DNA of 52,911 nt from Octopus bimaculoides (taxonomy: Eukaryota), in NCBI RefSeq assembly GCF_001194135.2, contig NC_068987.1, positions 44,325,152-44,378,062 of the forward strand. Reading direction: 5' to 3'. Position numbers and translations under genes: made by a program. Every line of letters starts with the position of its first letter. Positions within the stretch are counted from its first letter, which is position 1. Below are positions 1,975 to 52,908 of this stretch, piece after piece. Under the pieces are notes generated by a model. It saw nothing but the letters and a program-made list of their open reading frames with translations. It was not told where the DNA came from and did not search any database.

Positions 1975-2555
1975 TATCAAAAAACCAGACGGTACTACAG
2001 GAATCAGCAGCGGAAACATGGTAACAGCAAACAGAACACTGATAAACAAAGTGCTTTACACTTCAGAAGACCCGCCCCAACTCGTTTACATCAACGTACC
2101 AGCAGCATGCAGGCCCAATGGGACGGCAGCTCAACTATACTTCACATTCGACATAACATACTTCCTAGAGGTGGAATGCTACTTCGAAGCTATGCACCAC
2201 CCACAGAAAGTAGCAACCATATGCCCGGCAGTAGCACAGCAAGCAACATACAAAGGATTCAACTACGACCTCTTCTTAGTCACGCCCCCTGGCAGGCACT
2301 TGAATCATACCACTCCCAAAGGAAAAAGGCACGGCAGAACTACATTCATAGACGAGGACGCCGCCGGAAACAAAGTGCTTAAACATCTGTCAGGCCACTT
2401 CGTTAATCGCTAAATACCAGCGACAGCGTTTACTCAACACTGGGCGGGAAAAAACTCAATATATACAGCTAACAAAACACGATTTCACCAGACAGCCGCC
2501 AGCGATGGAGCCTACAACATCAACGTACCAGCAGCATGCAGAACAATTAAAAGGT
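1975..2555 (+). other. Unknown coding-like segment, possibly a parvovirus-like capsid remnant
   Basis: A/C-rich, GC-elevated segment, open in frame to 2413. PPQLVYINVP...QLYFTFDITYFLEVECYF resembles by eye the C-terminal strands of Parvoviridae capsids. No search was run. Confidence 0.3.
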
Positions 2556-9567: not shown

Positions 9568-9739
9568 ATGACTGCCCGAGGTATAAGGAAGAAACAGAAG
9601 GCAGTGTCCCGTTCAGCCAAAGCAGGAGTGCTCTTTCCAGTCGGTCGGATGCAGCGCTATCTCAAGAAAGGCACGCATAACTTCCGAATAGGTGCAGGGG
9701 CGCCCGTTTATATGGCAGCTGTTATAGAGTACCTGGCTG
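9568..9739 (+). CDS. macroH2A: macroH2A coding exon 1 (H2A fold, N-terminal part)
   Basis: ATG at 9568 in AAGATGA context. Translates [57 protein letters not shown], typical of H2A/macroH2A. Ends in phase 1 at G|gtacgt; 172 nt. Confidence 0.95.
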
Positions 9740-12700
9740 GTACGTATGTAGGCAAGTCTACGTGTGTGTATGTCTATATAATCTATGTACAGTGAGTGTG
9801 TATATGACGATATATATATATATATATGCGTGTGTGTATATATGTAAATATATGTCGGTGGGTGTGTGTGTATATATGTGTGTATGTAAGTATACATGTG
9901 ACTATATATATATATATGAATGTGTGTATATACATATTTTTTTTTAGTGTATGTATGTGTGAGTACATGTGTGTGTGTATGAATCTATGTATGTATCAAT
10001 ATAATATATATNNNNNNNNNNNNNNNNNNNNNNNNNNNNNNNNNNNNNNNNNNNNNNNNNNNNNNNNNNNNNNNNNNNNNNNNNNNNNNNNNNNNNNNNN
10101 NNNNNNNNNNNNNNNNNNNNNNNNNNNNNNNNNNNNNNNNNNNNNNNNNNNNNNNNNNNNNNNNNNNNNNNNNNNNNNNNNNNNNNNNNNNNNNNNNNNN
10201 NNNNNNNNNNNNNNNNNNNNNNNNNNNNNNNNNNNNNNNNNNNNNNNNNNNNNNNNNNNNNNNNNNNNNNNNNNNNNNNNNNNNNNNNNNNNNNNNNNNN
10301 NNNNNNNNNNNNNNNNNNNNNNNNNNNNNNNNNNNNNNNNNNNNNNNNNNNNNNNNNNNNNNNNNNNNNNNNNNNNNNNNNNNNNNNNNNNNNNNNNNNN
10401 NNNNNNNNNNNNNNNNNNNNNNNNNNNNNNNNNNNNNNNNNNNNNNNNNNNNNNNNNNNNNNNNNNNNNNNNNNNNNNNNNNNNNNNNNNNNNNNNNNNN
10501 NNNNNNNNNNNNNNNNNNNNNNNNNNNNNNNNNNNNNNNNNNNNNNNNNNNNNNNNNNNNNNNNNNNNNNNNNNNNNNNNNNNNNNNNNNNNNNNNNNNN
10601 NNNNNNNNNNNNNNNNNNNNNNNNNNNNNNNNNNNNNNNNNNNNNNNNNNNNNNNNNNNNNNNNNNNNNNNNNNNNNNNNNNNNNNNNNNNNNNNNNNNN
10701 NNNNNNNNNNNNNNNNNNNNNNNNNNNNNNNNNNNNATATATATATATATATATACGCCAGTAGATGCAAATAGAGAATAAGAGAGGAAAATAAAGTAAC
10801 AGCCTCTTTCCCTCACGAACACAAACACCAAACATTGACCATAGTAACTATTTATTTGACTCTTCTGGTATCGAATTATTTTTACACTTCTTAATTAATG
10901 ATGACCCATTCTCTCAACAACTTTTATTCGTTGTATCTCCCTCTTTCTGCCCCTCCATCAGTTGTCACGTACCTCCCTCCGTGTCCCTTTATGCCTTGAA
11001 TATACTTATTCATTACCTACACAGACACACCCATTTATCATCTACCTCTCGCGCATAAAAACAGGCACACATACACGTATACGTACATGCATATGCGCAA
11101 TCATGCATACACACACAAACCCACAAAGTACATATATATACAAATTCATTCGTCAATACATAAATAAAAGTATACACACATACGTCCGAATACTTGTACT
11201 GTGCTATGTATATTCACATGTGTACAACAATACACACAAACCTTGTGTGTGATACAGACACTTGCAAACAGAAACACACACTCACACACTTTGGAAGGAA
11301 ATATAAAATGTGTACTATCTATTGACATGACATTTAACCAATCAACAACAGTCTCTTCTTTTTCCTGTACACATCTTACAACTCAGCATCATTCTTCACT
11401 TCTGAAGCAAAACAACACTGAGTTTTACTCTGACACAGAACTACTTTGACGCACAACACCACCACCACTGTTCTATGACACATGACATACCATCACTGCT
11501 TCTTTATCTGATGTATTACACTCTAACACTGTTCAATGATACCACACGTCCCCTGTCTAGTTATGCAATACTTTAATCCACTCCTGATACACACAACAAA
11601 ATCTGCTTTCTCTGACATAGAAACTCCCCTTTACTGGCCTCTAATAGAATCTGTGTCTGCTCCTTGGGATGTGAAAAGATACTTTGGTTATTTGGATAAC
11701 AGAAGAACCCATAGTCCTAATCATGCTTGCCAGAAGAAGTAATGGTCTTAGAGCGTCTTTGATCATAAATCTTTCTCAACCACAACTATCCCACTTTTCC
11801 TCTGACCATCTGAAAATTCCATCTCCTTTAGCTGTACCACTCTTCGGGCACTCAATATATATCAAACATCAAACTCTGTCATTGTACCATGACACTGTAT
11901 GATCTGTAGGTGTGCTCTGTATAGTTTGCTGGTCTGCTGTGAGTTTTGACATGAGTTGGAAATTAAGTGATTTCAGATTCTATCTCACCACTGAACACCT
12001 TGAGTGAGTGTCTTCTACTATTGCTCCAGATCAAGTACAGATTTGTGAATAAAACTTGGTGAAAGAGGAACCATATTGCAACCCATTGCAGGGACTGTTC
12101 TTGTACTTGTTTTGTAGGTTTAATCTATAACTCAGTTTAGCTCCACTACCACTTTGTATATCTAGTCTGTTGTAAGCATTCAGTTACAATCTCTATGTAT
12201 AACTTGATCCCTTTAGTCTTGGAGACCTTGAAATGGATCATGTAGATAGAGACCACTCTTCCATATTTCATTAAGCTAGTCCAAACAAAAAAGAAACTTT
12301 TATTACAATGAGAAGATTGCAGAATGTGCTTACTGAGTTCTTTGTGATCTGACTGCATCACAACAGACTCAATGAGAGAATCATGTCTGGTAAAATTAAT
12401 CCAATGACATGCAGGGTTTTTTGTTTTTTTGTTTTTTTTGTCTAGGTTCAACTAAAGGATTGGGTTTTAACATTGAAAAAGTACAAAGAGCTTTGCCACC
12501 TAAATAGACATTACTTTTTTTCTTTGTTTCATGTCGTGTGTGTGAATAAATGCCTCCAAAGCTATGGGTACAGACATTATTATGTTATTAAGAAGTTCTC
12601 TTTACATTACAAACATGTGGTTTGGGGTTCAAATTCACTGCATGGCACATCAGACCTCTTTCTTCTGAAATATAGTCTTCAGTTGATCAGTGACTCATGT

Positions 12701-20570: not shown

Positions 20571-20677
20571 CTGAAATTTTAGAATTATCTGGAAATGCTG
20601 CTCGTGACAATAAGAAAATCCGTATAGTGCCACGCCATATCTTATTGGCCATCGCTAATGATGAAGAACTTCACCTT
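20571..20677 (+). CDS. macroH2A: macroH2A coding exon 2 (H2A fold)
   Basis: Acceptor ttccttctcaccattacag|, donor |gtgagt; 107 nt. Continues the frame as (A)[35 protein letters not shown]. Confidence 0.95.
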
Positions 20678-24822: not shown

Positions 24823-25113
24823 TTACTTAAACATGTCACCATTCCTGCTGGTGGGGTACTGCCAAAGATCCACCCTGAATTGCTCAGCCAGCAGAAGAGA
24901 AGAGGAGGCAAAGCAATACAGCAACCATCTACATCCACTGTGAGTGGTGCAAGTACCTCCAGATCTGGAGCACAACCACCACCAACAAAAAAAGCCAAGT
25001 TGACCAATGCACAGAATAGCCATCCAGATACAACAACTGCTGCCAGAAAACCTGCTGCTGTTCCTGCAAATAAGGTTACTAAGACTGTTGATAGCAAACC
25101 AAAAGGTGTCAAA
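24823..25113 (+). CDS. macroH2A: macroH2A coding exon 3 (docking domain and basic linker)
   Basis: Acceptor ttccacag|, donor AAA|gtaagt; 291 nt, phase 0/0. LLKHVTIPAGGVLPKIHPELL has the macroH2A-type IHPELL; the linker contains PPPTKKAK (compare human PPPAKKAK). Confidence 0.9.
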
Positions 25114-26590: not shown

Positions 26591-26692
26591 GCTCGAATAT
26601 TAAAAGATGCTGAAAATGTAAAGATGGCTGCTGCAGAGAATCTGGCTGGATTTTCGGTTTTATCTGAGAAGAAACTATTCCTAGGACAGAAG
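26591..26692 (+). CDS. macroH2A: macroH2A coding exon 4 (linker end and macrodomain start)
   Basis: Acceptor ttttcttatttcag|, donor AAG|gtgagt; 102 nt. ARILKDAENVKMAAAENLAGFSVLSEKKLFLGQK matches the macroH2A motif GFTVLSTKSLFLGQK. Confidence 0.93.
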
Positions 26693-28545: not shown

Positions 28546-28636
28546 ATGACAGTATTGCAAGGAGACATAACCAAAATCAATGCTGATGCCATCATCCACC
28601 CAACAAATTCCACATATTATATGGGTGGTGAAGTGG
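28546..28636 (+). CDS. macroH2A: macroH2A coding exon 5 (macroH2A1.1-type macrodomain exon)
   Basis: Acceptor ttttgttcccag|, donor G|gtaagt; 91 nt. MTVLQGDITKINADAIIHPTNSTYYMGGEV(G) aligns to human 1.1 [31 protein letters not shown]. Confidence 0.95.
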
Positions 28637-30452: not shown

Positions 30453-30539
30453 GATCAGCCCTTGAAAAAGCAGGTGGTAAAGATTTCACCGAAGAAGTAA
30501 AGGAACTAGCAGCCAAAGGGACCTTAACGATATCTGCTG
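30453..30539 (+). CDS. macroH2A: macroH2A coding exon 6 (macrodomain)
   Basis: Acceptor ttcttatttttag|, donor G|gtaact; 87 nt. (G)SALEKAGGKDFTEEVKELAAKGTLTISA aligns to human GNTLEKKGGKEFVEAVLEL. Confidence 0.93.
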
Positions 30540-36830: not shown

Positions 36831-36847
36831 TATTATCATTATTATAA

Positions 36848-36900
<53 letters not shown>

Positions 36901-36904
36901 GTTA

Positions 36905-37365
36905 TTAAGATGGCAAGCTGATAGAATCATTACTACGCCAGGCAAAATGTTTAGCAGCATTTCATCTGTCTTTACATTCTAAGTTCAAATTCAACCGAGG
37001 TCAACTTTGCCTTTCATCCTTTTGGGGGTCGATGAAATAAGTACCAGTTACACACTAGGTTTGATGTAGTCAACTAACCCCTTCCCCCAAAATTTCAGGC
37101 CTTGTGCCTATAGTAGAAAGGATTATTATTATTATTAAAGTGGCAAGCTAGTAGAATCCTTAGCATGTCAGGCAAAATGCTTAGCAATATTTCGTCTGCC
37201 TTTACGTTCTGAGTTCAAATTCTGCTGAGGTCAACTTTGCCTTTCATCCTTTTGGTGTCAATAAATTAAGCACCAGTGAAAAACTGGAGTCGATGTAATT
37301 GACTAGTCCCCTCCCACAAAATTTCAGGCCTTTAGTAGAAAGAATTATTATTGTTGTTGTTGTTG

Positions 37366-37432
<67 letters not shown>

Positions 37433-37875
37433 GGCATCAAAATGGCAGAATTGTTACCATACTGAACAAAATGTGTAACAGCATTTCTTCCAGTTATTTA
37501 TGCTCTGAGATCAAGTTTTGCCTAGGTCAACTTTGCCTTTCATCTTTTTGGAGGTCAATAAAATAGAGTACCAGTCAAGCACTGGAGCCAATAGTATCAG
37601 CTAAACTTTTCCCAAGATTTGAAACCATTATTACTATTATCATTTTCAGAATTGTCAGAGTGTCAGAAAAAAAAATGCCTTGGGGTATTTAGTTGCATCA
37701 CTTTCTTTTCTGAGTTCAAATTCCACTAAGATCAACTCTGCCTTTCATCCCACCCAGATCAATAAAATAAAATATCAATTTTGTACAAAGGTTAAGGTAA
37801 TCAAGTAACCCCTTCCCCATCAAAATTGTTCACATTGTGCTTAAAAACCAAAACTTAGAAATCATCATCATCATC

Positions 37876-38657: not shown

Positions 38658-38835
38658 TTGCAATGTCTCGCGGCTGGAATCTGCCTTCAAAGTCTGTCAT
38701 CCACCTGAACAGTCCATCATGGGGTTGCCACAATGCCCAGAAGCTTCTCGAGAAGTCCGTGCAAAATATATTTGCCACAGCCGATAAGAATCACATGCGC
38801 TCCTTGGCCATACCACTTCTTGCCGGCACAGTGAA
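38658..38835 (+). CDS. macroH2A: macroH2A coding exon 7 (macrodomain); CDS continues to an unlocated terminal exon
   Basis: Acceptor tttattgcag|, donor AA|gtaagt; 178 nt, phase 1/2. (V)AMSRGWNLPSKSVIHLNSPSWGCHNAQKLLEKSVQNIFATADKNHMRSLAIPLLAGTV aligns to human [52 protein letters not shown]. Confidence 0.9.
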
Positions 38836-40901
38836 GTAAGTTTAACACAATGGTACAAATGTTCTGTGCCACGCCCCTTCACACACACATGCATACACAC
38901 TCATACACACACATATATGTATACACACAGACATGTGTATGTATGCAATTGTACCATGTACATTTGCATACATACAGTTTGTGAGCTTCATTTTGCCTTG
39001 CCATAATCTGTCTCTAACTCACATTCCTCTTTGTACATCTTTGATTTCTGCCTCTCTCTTATGGAATTTGGGAATTTGGCTCCTTGTTGGTGTTGTGGAT
39101 ATAGTTGTTACTGTTGTTGTTGTTGTTGTTGTTGTTGTTCTTGTGATTGTTTTGTGGTTGTTTGGATATATGGTTGAGATAGTTGTTCTGGATTGTCTGT
39201 GTTTTTTTTTTTTTTTTTTTTTTTTGAAACAATGGATGTCCAACTTCTGTTGGTATATTAAACAATCAAGTAGAGGCTTCTACATGGTTGCTTAACCTGC
39301 TAAAAATAAGACCTAGATTTCCCTGAAATTAAAAATGGAAGGAAACACGTATATCCAAAATAACATAGTCTTGACTATGCTATACTTGAAACTGTCACCT
39401 CATTTAACACCATTACCGTGTGTTCTGAGATGCCTGTAGCAGAGTCCATTCTATTGCCAGCATCCAGACTAAGTTTGTTTTGAGAATAGCTTCCTTCCCT
39501 CCTTCCCTTCCTTCTTCTCTACCTTCCTTCCATTAGTGACAAGATCCCTGAAAAGTATCATACTTATGCTGCTCTTCCTCTCAGACTATGCTATAAAAAA
39601 AGAGAACAAAACAAAATGAAATAATCAAAGCTTGAAATCCTTTCATCACAATCTACTTGACTTGGGGTTCAACAACAATAATAACTGCCAGGTGAGAGGT
39701 GAACAGTTCAATTCCTGTCACCAATTTTGTATTGTGTCTCTTACTCCTGTAACTCACTCAAAACATTTACCACCCAACAACCTCCTTTAGATGATTGAAA
39801 GTAGTTTGTTACTCTGATGTAAGCAGTAGCAGCAGTGTAGATTTAATGAATGTTTTGTTGGCCTCTACAATGCATCATCATCATCATTTAACGTCCGCTT
39901 TCCATGCTAGCATGGGTTGGACAATTTGACTGAGGACTGGCAAACCAGATGGCTACGCCAGGCGCCAATCTGATTTGGCAGAGTTCCTACAGCTGGATGC
40001 CCTTCCTAACACCAACCGCTCTGAGAGTGTAGTGGGTGCTTTTACATGCCACCGGCACGAAGGCCAGTCAGGCGGTACTGGCAATGGCCACGCTCAAAAT
40101 GGTGTATTTTATGTACCACCTGCACAGGAGCCAGTCCGGTGGCTTTGGCAACGACCTCGCTTGAATGTCTTTTCACATGCCACCGGCACAAGTGCCAGGA
40201 AGGCGGCACTGGTAACGATCACGCTCAAATGGTGCTANNNNNNNNNNNNNNNNNNNNNNNNNNNNNNNNNNNNNNNNNNNNNNNNNNNNNNNNNNNNNNN
40301 NNNNNNNNNNNNNNNNNNNNNNNNNNNNNNNNNNNNNNNNNNNNNNNNNNNNNNNNNNNNNNNNNNNNNNNNNNNNNNNNNNNNNNNNNNNNNNNNNNNN
40401 NNNNNNNNNNNNNNNNNNNNNNNNNNNNNNNNNNNNNNNNNNNNNNNNNNNNNNNNNNNNNNNNNNNNNNNNNNNNNNNNNNNNNNNNNNNNNNNNNNNN
40501 NNNNNNNNNNNNNNNNNNNNNNNNNNNNNNNNNNNNNNNNNNNNNNNNNNNNNNNNNNNNNNNNNNNNNNNNNNNNNNNNNNNNNNNNNNNNNNNNNNNN
40601 NNNNNNNNNNNNNNNNNNNNNNNNNNNNNNNNNNNNNNNNNNNNNNNNNNNNNNNNNNNNNNNNNNNNNNNNNNNNNNNNNNNNNNNNNNNNNNNNNNNN
40701 NNNNNNNNNNNNNNNNNNNNNNNNNNNNNNNNNNNNNNNNNNNNNNNNNNNNNNNNNNNNNNNNNNNNNNNNNNNNNNNNNNNNNNNNNNNNNNNNNNNN
40801 NNNNNNNNNNNNNNNNNNNNNNNNNNNNNNNNNNNNNNNNNNNNNNNNNNNNNNGGCTGAAAAAAGTATATAGGATTACTCATTACATATCTATCTATCT
40901 A

Positions 40902-40944
<43 letters not shown>

Positions 40945-41369
40945 CAGGAAAGTTTATTCTCCTTGAGTAGTTATAAATATGTCAAAGAAAAGAAGATAAA
41001 GGAGAACTACTAAATTGAAATAAATATGGAAAACTAGAGTTGAAAATGTAAGCTACCAAAGAGTATATCGGGATAGAGATCAGGAGTGTTTATTAGTGAA
41101 ATAAAAGTGAAGTGGGGGGAGACAGTGTGATTGTTGATAAATAGCTAACTGTTAATCTATTCTTTGATATTGAAATGAACACAGATCATAAAGATTAAAG
41201 AGTTTATTTTTATATACAGATATTTGAAGTATCTGTTCGTGACTAAAGCCTGAAGAAGGGAAAGAGAGTGTGTTGTGCGTGCATATGTTTATGTGTGTAT
41301 GTGTGCATGCATACATGCGTGATTTTCTTGGTAAATAGTTAAGCTTTGATGTAGTCAATCAGATATTCT

Positions 41370-45848: not shown

Positions 45849-47401
45849 ACAAACATTACTGTCACCCAGCACTATTTCGCTTCCATTGCTATTTTCTCCC
45901 ATCGTACCCATGCTCCTCTTGCCCATTCACCTTATCCCTTCTGTCAGTACTCTTTGTTCTGTTCAGCCTTTGCTGCTCATGCTACCTTGAACAAATGGAG
46001 ATGTTACAGGGATAAGAGGAACTTTTAGTCTCCTTGAGAGCATGACAACCTCTCCAGATCTGGTTCCACAATTAAATGCATTTAATGCTCTCTGTAAAGG
46101 TTTTAGTGTTAGAGGGGTTCCAAAAATTGGAGCATCAAAATATGGTCTTTTGGTTTTGGGGGAATGCACAAGATGTGAATAACAATTACTTTAAACCATA
46201 AAGAATTGTCCCTACTATGCCTGTCTGGAAAGCAGACATAAGATTATAAAAATGAGATTGTGTGTGTGTGTTTGTATATGTGGATGTTGTGGACTCCCCT
46301 GTTGTAGATGACAGATGAGATATCCACAGTTTCTTACTGAACAACCTGTACAAATGATTTGTTTACAGTGATCAAATGTTTGTACTGTACACTAGCTCAC
46401 TCCCTTCATCAAATCGACATTGCCTGTACAGGTGCACAGCATGCTACATGTCAGATGTCAAAGTGATCACAGAGCAATGTCAGATGAAATATTTCCCAAC
46501 CGATCCAGGAATCAAGTCCATGATCTCATGATCATGAGTGCAACATTCTAACCACTTGGTCACATGCCTGGTGTGTGTGTTTGTGTGTATTGAAGGTTAT
46601 TTCAGAATGCTGAGCCTTACAAAGGAGATTACAGAAGACCAAGATGTGGGGCATTGTTGTACTCAAGAAGATCCACCTACCACAGCAAAATTGAAATCCT
46701 AAAACCAAGGTGCCATGTAAAAGGCATTGGTGTGGGTGTTGGTGCCATGTAAAAAGCACTGGTGATGGTGTCAGATAAAAAACACCCAGTGCACTCTGTA
46801 AAATGGTTGTCATTAGGAAAGGCATCCAGCCATAGAAACCAACCCAGAGCAGACTGTGGAACCTGCTGCAGCCCCTGGCCTTGCCAATTCCTGTCAAATT
46901 GTCCAGCCCATTTCCAGCATGGAAATAAGACATTAAATATTGATGATGATGGTGCTGTGTGTGTATGTGTCTGTGATGTACATGTGGCTGTGTGAAAGAC
47001 ATTTGCTTCCCAACCACATCGTTCTGGGTTCAATCCCACTGCTCCAAGTTTACCAAAGCTTTGTGAGGGGATGTGGATGATAGAAAGAAGCCCATCATAT
47101 ACATATGCATGAGTGTGCTCGCACTTGTGCATATTTCTGTCTCCCTCTCTTGAATGTGTGTTATAGTTGCAAGCATTACTGCCATACAAATAATGTCGTT
47201 CATTTCCAAAATTCTGCAAGAATATGTCTGACCATGAGGATAAATTACCTTGCTTGAAAACAGGTGAGGATTGGCAATAGAAAGAGCATCCAGCCATAGA
47301 AAATCTGCTTTGAATAAACTCCATTTGATCCATGCAAGCATTGAAAAGTGGAAGGCAAGTGATGATAAGGATGTGTGTGTGTCTGTGTGTGTATACGATT
47401 G

Positions 47402-51651: not shown

Positions 51652-52908
51652 GTCATTAAGAAAGAAATGTCTGATTTTGAACTGAAAGTTTATTTTACTT
51701 TATTTATCTCAACAAAAAGCAATGCAGTTAATCAAAGTATGCACCTAAATTATCAACACAGTTTTGCCATTTTATCAGTAGCTTATTTATGCCAGCAGCA
51801 AAGAATTCTGGAGAGCAAGAGGTGATGAAATCATGAAAGGCTGTTTTTGCATCTTCAGATTTGAAGTTTTTTCCTTGCAAAACGTTGTCTAATGTCTAGA
51901 AAATGTGCTAGTCAGTTGGTGCAAGGTCTGGTGAATGTGATGGATGACAGAGTACTTCCAAGTTCAGTTCCTGTAACTTGAGTAGCATTCTTTGTGCAAC
52001 ATGTGGTCAACCATTGTCTTGCAAGAGAATTGGCCTGTCTCTATTGACCAATCTCGGTTGCTTAATTGCAACTTTACTCATCATTTCATCCAACTGGTTG
52101 ATGTATACATCCGCTCTAATTGACTTGCCAGATCTCATGAAACTGTTGTGGATGACACCAGTGCTGGACCACAAAACAGACACCATTAGCTTTTTTTGGT
52201 GAATATTTTTTTCTGGATTGTATTTTGGCACTTCATCTCTATGAAACCACCATTTAGAATGCTTGCTATTGTGGAAAAGAATCCATTTTTCATCACACGC
52301 AATAATACGATGCAAAAATGATTCGCTTTTATGCCATGACAGCAAAGAACAGCAAGTTTCAAAACAACATGCTTGTTCAGTTCATGTGGTATCCATTTAT
52401 CCAGCTTCTTTACCTTACCGATCTGTTTCAGGTGGTCCTATACAGTTGGAATCGAAACATCAAACTTTGCTGCTAACCCATATGTAGTTTGAGGTGTATC
52501 CACTTCCACTACAGTTTCCAGCTCATCATTAACCACCTTGGTTTCAGGTCTACCACAGAGTAAAGTCACCAGACCAGAACTTCTCAAACCATCCACATAC
52601 AGTGTGCTCATTCACCACATCTTCACCAAACACCCCATTGATGTTTCAAACTGTCTGGGATGCGTTGGTTCCATGACGGAACTCATATTCATAAACAACA
52701 CAAATTTTTGATCTATCCATGCGTTCACAAAAATTGATTTACAAGAGAAAACTTACAATATAATCAGACACCATGAATTGCATTTCGAAAAGTGGTGATG
52801 TAACTCTTCAATGCTGTAAAACAAAGAATTACAGGATAAAACATTAGAGTTAACGACTGTCAAACTTGATGCATAAGAAAATCAAATATTTTATTCTTAA
52901 TGACCTGA
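51648..52908 (-). mobile_element. Full-length-sized (1261 bp) defective mariner
   Basis: TIR TCAGGTCATTAAGAA.AAAT at both ends with flanking TA. IIACDEKWILFHN and ILLQDN motifs are present; the ORF is broken. Confidence 0.92.

Follow-up and report, generated by a model that had tools for sequence, protein, structure and literature searches.

By gene structure and annotated isoforms, exons 7A and 7B of octopus macroH2A are mutually exclusive homologous tandem exons of one gene, of which 7B encodes the canonical diphosphate-binding loop of the macrodomain and 7A a rewritten one. The octopus most likely produces a binding-competent 7B isoform together with a 7A isoform in which ADP-ribose binding would be lost or altered. 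MacroH2A is the textbook metabolite-reading histone, and splicing between macroH2A1.1 and macroH2A1.2 decides whether the metabolite is read. We analyzed a stretch of 52,911 nt from Octopus bimaculoides (hereafter, the window), in which exon 7A lies. An earlier note on this DNA had treated 7A as the only exon 7 of the gene. That assumption failed, as 7A is one of two mutually exclusive exons and 7B is located outside the window.

The window contains the first seven coding exons of macroH2A

Six upstream exons with AG/GT boundaries and exon 7A joined into one unbroken 342-codon frame, which matched the first 342 residues of O. bimaculoides macroH2A (XP_014789810.1; P0284) exactly. The window contains the first seven coding exons of the single O. 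bimaculoides macroH2A gene (Table 1). The N-terminal H2A histone fold was present, as exons 1–3 aligned to human macroH2A residues 1–137 and Pfam domains PF00125 and PF16211 were detected on the full-length Octopus protein P0164. A K/P/S/T-rich basic linker was encoded in exon 3, and the C-terminal macrodomain was recognized as PF01661 on P0164.

Table 1. Features of the macroH2A gene in the window (window coordinates)
Feature	Position	Strand	Basis or remark
Alternative first coding exon, RefSeq X4 (MEPTTSTYQQHAEQLK)	2505..2552	+	Replaces exon 1; first half of the histone fold removed
Coding exon 1 (MTARG...EYLA; first half of H2A histone fold)	9568..9739	+	tblastn with human macroH2A1.1 and P0164; ATG start, GT donor
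Coding exon 2	20571..20677	+	tblastn with human macroH2A1.1, splice boundaries
Coding exon 3 (end of histone fold and basic linker)	24823..25113	+	tblastn with human macroH2A1.1 and P0164
Coding exon 4 (end of linker, start of macrodomain; GFSVLSEKKLFLGQK)	26591..26692	+	Splice boundaries, tblastn with P0164
Coding exon 5 (MTVLQGDITKINADAIIHPTNSTYYMGGEVG; D203 equivalent, GGEVG loop 1 = G223/G224 equivalents)	28546..28636	+	tblastn, match to proteins of solved structure
Coding exon 6 (SALEKAGGKDFTEEVKELAAKGTLTISA)	30453..30539	+	Splice boundaries, tblastn with P0164
Coding exon 7A	38658..38835	+	178 nt; entered 1 base into a split codon, ends 2 bases into the next
Rewritten-loop codons I-P-L-L-A-G-T-V and AA (giving N)	38810..38835	+	Stand where the canonical [FIL]-P-S-[IV]-[GS]-S-G-(R/N) diphosphate-binding loop is expected
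Alternative terminal exon (G TGG TCC ... GTT TGA)	52432..52492	+	Joined to 7A in RefSeq X3 (XP_052825531.1): ...AGTVK WSYTVGIETSNFAANPYVV, then stop

Exon 7A is a coding exon with AG/GT boundaries, preceded by ...ttattgcag and followed by gtaagt. Translation of window 38658–38835 in frame 3 gave AMSRGWNLPSKSVIHLNSPSWGCHNAQKLLEKSVQNIFATADKNHMRSLAIPLLAGTV and two remaining bases, AA; the exon reads ...RSLAIPLLAGTV+AA. The earlier note had read the loop as IPLLAGTV followed by K or N, without GSG, and this reading holds: AA from 7A and T from the last exon make the residue N, so that the mature 7A loop is IPLLAGTVNGGFPK. The exon was identical in P0284, P0287, P0285 and P0286. Read-through of the 7A donor (window 38834–38839) gives AAG TAA, i.e., an unspliced transcript would end in ...AGTVK and a stop codon.

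No C-terminal exon of the ...GFPK...VYFVLFD... type was detected in the readable window using tblastn with human macroH2A1.1, Smith–Waterman comparison in six frames, or a hidden Markov model of 31 macroH2A C-termini with filters off. We considered that these exons might be hidden in the N gaps of the window and rejected this, as they were located beyond its end in the O. vulgaris and O. bimaculoides loci. Therefore, the C-terminal exons are missing because 7B and the last exon sit past the end of the window.

Homologue searches depended on the query. With the macrodomain part alone, a single 69-aa fragment was obtained, and with all 342 residues of the partial protein, Octopus proteins of 99% identity; the word index of the search seems to be biased to matches near the N-terminus of database proteins. 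Among 50%-identity representatives, no cephalopod sequence was found, probably because these were folded into a scallop cluster; the search did show that the loop motif is widespread.

Exons 7A and 7B are alternatives in one gene

Exon 7B is 175 nt long and encodes the loop FPSVGSGR. The earlier note had described exon 7 as one codon longer than expected, and the comparison with 7B bears this out: 7A has 178 nt, and the isoforms have 395 aa with 7A and 394 aa with 7B. The two exons are identical at 21 of 58 residues (about 35%). In both, 1 base of a split codon has been read before the exon starts, and 2 bases of another have been read when it ends. As both lengths leave a remainder of 1 when divided by 3, including both exons or neither would break the frame; therefore, exactly one must be used. 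Consistently, each of the nine RefSeq isoforms examined carries either 7A or 7B.

In the O. vulgaris locus (L001), 7A occupies 41121–41298 and 7B approximately 59516–59690, about 18 kb downstream, and the shared last exon starts at 61873. The exon ends are ...GTG AA|gtaagt for 7A and ...GGA CG|gtaagt for 7B, and the last exon opens with T GGT GGA TTC CCT AAG. Thus, the split codon reads AA|T (N) after 7A and CG|T (R) after 7B, and both run on into GGFPK. The window is collinear with L001, its last bases corresponding to L001 54573. In the chromosome assembly of O. bimaculoides (L002), the window spans 7497–60407 and 7A starts at 46154; 7B is visible with an open frame at approximately 66263–66429, about 5.9 kb past the end of the window and adjoining an N gap at 65912–66262. 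This gap (CM046607.1, about 5.5 kb past the end of the window) covers the 7B acceptor and first codons.

The four O. bimaculoides RefSeq isoforms all carry 7A and none carries 7B, probably because the assembly gap removes the 7B acceptor. In O. sinensis, X1, X3 and X4 carry 7A, and X2 and X5 carry 7B. P0164, which is the O. vulgaris X1 and O. sinensis X3 sequence (395 aa), was 99% identical to the window protein and continues ...IPLLAGTVNGGFPKHTAAQ... P0165 (O. sinensis X5, 394 aa) shares with P0164 the first 283 and the last 52 residues, with the canonical loop between them. Full-length 7A isoforms are listed by RefSeq in three Octopus species, as computational models. No protein from transcript assemblies (Logan) was found for either Octopus isoform.

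The earlier note had allowed that a canonical exon, for example one in a gap, might be used instead. This was half borne out: 7B exists, its 5′ end lies in an N gap and it is used by O. sinensis X2 and X5, so that the canonical loop is not lost at the locus. The suggestion of a divergent paralogue was likewise correct for the exon and incorrect for the gene. Taking "the" octopus macroH2A from O. bimaculoides RefSeq would lead to the false conclusion that the canonical loop has been lost.

The 7A isoform is predicted to keep the fold and lacks the GSG loop

The macrodomain part matched solved human and rat macroH2A1.1 with E = 6e-41, compared with 2e-30 for macroH2A1.2 and 4e-26 for macroH2A2. 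The alignment with macroH2A1.1 was gapless across exon 7A up to the altered loop, as the earlier note had stated, and its confident part ends at 'aipll / afpsi'. The D203 equivalent (QGDITK) and the loop 1 G223–G224 equivalent (YMGGEVG) are intact in exon 5, again in agreement with that note, and the Phe348 equivalent is intact in QIYFVLYD of the shared last exon, outside the window (P0284, L002).

Loop 2 contacts the diphosphate mainly via backbone amides. G312-S-G314 at canonical length is absent from the 7A isoform (PLLAGTVNGG, with one additional residue) and present in the 7B isoform (PSVGSGRGG). The G314 column of 7A is occupied by V342 in the MAFFT alignment or by T341 if anchored from the left; the residue is beta-branched either way, and one residue is inserted. 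Nearly all animal macroH2A sequences sampled share the consensus [FIL]PS[IV][GS]SG(R/N)xGFPK. We aligned 53 macroH2A sequences, ranging from cnidarians to vertebrates; 48 had [FILV]P[SA][IVL][GS]SG followed by GFPK, and the G314 glycine was lost only in Octopus 7A and three ticks. Tegillarca-like P0175 (PSISSGN) and Caerostris (SFG) keep a glycine at this column.

AlphaFold2 models of the 7A and 7B isoforms had the same topology and order of secondary structure, and pLDDT exceeded 90 in most of the macrodomain. In the model, the paired-exon segment comprises a strand-helix-strand unit (E296–301, H310–327, E332–335) and the first half of macrodomain loop 2. Confidence differed little over the loop block, residues 341–350 (pLDDT of 75 in 7A and 82 in 7B). 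The 7A model superposed on human macroH2A1.1 (1ZR3/2FXK) with a TM score of 0.95–0.96 and an rmsd of 1.1–1.4 Å; i.e., the 7A isoform is predicted to keep the macroH2A1.1 fold. In human macroH2A1.1, G224E and G314E abolish PAR binding (PMC5770377). Because 7A lacks G-S-G, including the G314 equivalent, and contains one additional residue, altered or lost ADP-ribose binding is a reasonable expectation for this isoform.

Exon 7A is conserved within Octopus

We compared the exons of O. bimaculoides and O. vulgaris with the introns, in which the substitution divergence over aligned, ungapped columns was 6.0%; this reference value counts substitutions only, and BLAST percent identity, which counts gap columns, gives a divergence of about 11%. 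Exon 7A differed at 2 of 178 nt, both in one codon (S/A), with 58 of 59 residues, the splice sites and the frame kept. Against the intron reference, P was about 0.001 for 7A and about 0.03 for 7B (4/165), in a test of modest power given a local intron divergence of about 4%. The seven window exons together differed at 17 of 1028 nt (11 synonymous and 4 non-synonymous codons; P 4e-12). Thus, 7A is at least as conserved as 7B between the two species.

Unusually conserved flanks are a hallmark of regulated exons. The conservation of the 7A flanks was not clearly different from that of the flanks of other exons, and we dropped this argument.

The exon pair is older than Octopus

Tandem exons 7 in the same order were found in the gene of the scallop Pecten maximus (A then B; L003 7960–8136 and 9025–9201) and of the nemertean Lineus longissimus (A then B; L005 3966–4139 and 4613–4789). 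The isoform pairs of P. maximus and of the clam Mya arenaria differ in this exon only. Type A exons have the form ...IHVN[SG]PxWG...PSI[GS]SGN and type B exons the form ...IHC[NH]GPxW...FPSIGSGR; many further molluscs also use type A. Judging from these gene structures, the 7A/7B pair predates the mollusc–nemertean split; we claim it for molluscs and one nemertean, not for arthropods. An origin in the protostome ancestor had been considered in view of A-like and B-like forms in chelicerates, and was dropped because exon 7 is single in the scorpion and the tick: no second exon 7 was found in the genes of the hemichordate Saccoglossus, the scorpion Centruroides vittatus or the tick Ixodes hexagonus.

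GSG is kept in both exons of Pecten and of Lineus; therefore, the loop was rewritten later, on the lineage to Octopus. Octopus 7B is an ordinary type B exon, with 36–38 of 59 residues identical to B exons. Among the exons compared, Octopus 7A has diverged the furthest: it matches no A exon at more than 31 of 59 residues and has the longest neighbour-joining branch. We assigned it to type A because of its location, its final N codon and its NSPSWG motif, 7A being on a long neighbour-joining branch without clear placement.

Several further sequences touch on this distribution. The models of P0169 (Tegillarca granosa) and P0197 (Strigamia maritima) contain both alternative exons, or parts of them, in tandem and are likely mis-annotated mutually exclusive pairs; the Strigamia protein hints at a duplicated exon 7 in a myriapod. 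Cephalopod-like transcript assemblies (P0166–P0168, P0173 and P0290–P0298; MTARGIRKK..., 58–61% identical to the window protein, from many runs) were all of type B, and no 7A-type sequence was seen among them.

Other transcript variants and features of the locus

The O. bimaculoides X3 protein, which uses the alternative terminal exon, ends in ...AGTVKWSYTVGIETSNFAANPYVV followed by a stop, whereby the last strand and helix of the macrodomain are removed. O. sinensis X4 is similarly truncated (...AGTVNNIV). Such truncated 7A transcripts are probably minor or non-productive. An alternative GC donor (G|GCAAGT) lies 12 nt downstream of the exon 1 donor (window 9740–9751). Both O. bimaculoides and O. 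sinensis have an X1 isoform spliced at this donor, with GTYV inserted in histone-fold helix alpha-2.

In O. vulgaris, the exon 5 segment IHPTNSTYYMGGEV recurs unchanged in intron 4 (L001 28708–28749). This copy lies within about 226 bp that are absent from the window (between 27286 and 27299); it is due either to a partial duplication of the exon confined to this species or to an error of assembly. Window 36841–37592 matched many O. vulgaris sites (L001 39377–40940 and 62862–66692) with 68–89% identity, and appears to belong to a repeat family, dispersed or in tandem, with copies inside the gene and downstream of it.

Discussion

We propose that the 7B isoform would act as a macroH2A1.1-like ADP-ribose binder. 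The 7A isoform would retain its fold and its incorporation into chromatin, and its binding of ADP-ribose and PARP-derived ligands would be lost, weakened or re-specified. Exon choice in the octopus may thereby tune the link of macroH2A to NAD metabolism, as a convergent analogue of the vertebrate 1.1/1.2 choice acting on the other side of the pocket. Taken as a whole, a splicing switch composed of the exon pair, a canonical binder encoded with 7B and lost or altered binding with 7A is, on present sequences, a rather probable explanation. A broader version, in which an old lophotrochozoan 7A/7B choice predating the mollusc–nemertean split was remodelled in the octopus, 7A becoming a non-binder or a binder of another ligand, and gave rise to a vertebrate-independent histone–NAD/PARP splicing switch on the opposite pocket wall, is put forward more tentatively, as a serious possibility that falls somewhat short of probable.

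We also considered that the 7A isoform binds ADP-ribose about normally through a re-registered loop, with the contacts supplied instead by G340 or G344/G345 and by backbone amides, and that the A/B choice tunes affinity, partners or stability. The glycines G340, G344 and G345 do lie near the 7A loop, the remaining pocket residues are all intact, the fold is predicted with confidence, and 7A carries a vertebrate-like NSP motif that is absent from 7B; moreover, as other lophotrochozoans keep GSG in A and B, the pair there serves something other than on/off binding. However, P-S-[IV]-[GS]-S-G has been kept from cnidarians to vertebrates in 48 of the 53 sequences, the residue of 7A at the G314 column is T or V, whichever register is taken, with an inserted residue besides, and the G314E effect in human macroH2A1.1 (PMC5770377) also argues against normal binding, which we regard as rather unlikely. 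A gain of function, in which the 7A loop binds another nucleotide, an NAD metabolite or a protein partner, would be consistent with fast change on the Octopus lineage (the longest branch) followed by strong conservation within the genus. The same pattern fits plain loss of binding with the fold kept, as in vertebrate macroH2A1.2 and macroH2A2, and we consider a new function improbable.

The remaining explanations question whether 7A contributes to a working protein. If 7A were decaying or non-productive, through annotation noise or unproductive splicing, the working protein would always carry 7B; the computational origin of all known 7A isoforms, the joining of 7A to cryptic terminal exons with truncation of the domain in O. 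bimaculoides X3 and O. sinensis X4, and the uniformly type B cephalopod-like assemblies are in line with this. Yet 7A has kept an open frame, its two splice sites and 58 of its 59 residues while the introns differ by about 6% and by many indels, conservation is no lower than that of 7B, full-length 7A isoforms are annotated in three species, and many other molluscs use a type A exon. We therefore hold a non-productive 7A to be very improbable. The scaffold is gap-rich, the window having 13 N gaps, and the loop could be suspected to stem from an error in assembly or sequencing, for instance a frameshift. This was rejected, with a practically negligible probability, because the identical loop occurs in three Octopus species and three independent assemblies, among them O. 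vulgaris (GCA_951406725.2), the O. sinensis RefSeq proteins and both O. bimaculoides annotations, and because no other frame encodes a canonical loop.

The splicing switch proposed here resembles vertebrate MACROH2A1 (1.1/1.2) in that one gene has two mutually exclusive homologous macrodomain exons and the fold is unchanged. One isoform would have a complete ADP-ribose pocket and the other, in the octopus 7A, a presumably disrupted one. The octopus macrodomain is also closest to macroH2A1.1 by E value. However, the vertebrate exons cover the pocket from D203 to the G223/G224 loop 1, on its N-terminal side, whereas those of the octopus cover loop 2 (G312–G314) on its C-terminal side. The window also has just one copy of octopus exon 5, which corresponds to the vertebrate switch exon. 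Therefore, the two switches are independent. The pairs of other lophotrochozoans (Pecten and Mya RefSeq X1/X2, and the Lineus gene) share with Octopus the exon position, the A-then-B order, the phase, the lengths and the N/R split codon; they differ in having GSG in both exons, and only Octopus 7A has lost GSG and gained a residue.

Vertebrate macroH2A2 is not known to bind ADP-ribose. Its loop 2 is also off consensus (FPPFPSGRNCFPK; PDB 6FY5, 2XD7), but it is encoded by a separate gene rather than a splice form, keeps the G314 glycine and the loop length, and is altered in loop 1 too. The earlier note had proposed that the octopus departs from ADP-ribose binding by a route different from macroH2A1.2 and macroH2A2; this stands for macroH2A1.2 and only partly for macroH2A2, in which the same loop is changed. 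Tick macroH2A (Ixodes, Ornithodoros, Amblyomma) has lost GSG independently (VPPLATHSVASQK, VPALGTHSTGFTK, IPPMVSHSTSPSQK). In contrast to Octopus, Ixodes hexagonus has a single exon 7 with no canonical alternative, and the loss is constitutive; going by the residues at the pocket, the canonical ADP-ribose pocket seems to have been lost constitutively in tick macroH2A. The tick loops read VPPLATQ/H, VPALGTH and IPPMVSH (P0220, P0225, P0241 and P0245; I. hexagonus L004 19046–19222 and 35976–36137). GFPK is replaced by SQK in Ixodes and Amblyomma, and loop 1 of ticks is AGEVG or SGEVG.

The 7A and 7B isoforms are already known as computational RefSeq entries. We found no description of alternative macroH2A macrodomain exons outside vertebrates in the part of the literature open to our search. 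According to a 2025 publication by a macroH2A laboratory, the alternatively spliced exon came in with the vertebrates (PMC12551714). A survey of annelid histones kept one transcript per gene and deemed protein-changing splicing rare in histone genes, and a survey of mollusc histones did not discuss the macroH2A loop.

If the proposed reading is true, an older and independent exon pair in molluscs and a nemertean, together with the loss of the motif in octopus 7A, would revise the view that the spliced exon arose with vertebrates; control of the macrodomain pocket by splicing would have arisen at least twice. The octopus would offer a natural isoform pair differing only in loop 2, which could be used to probe what ADP-ribose binding does for chromatin.
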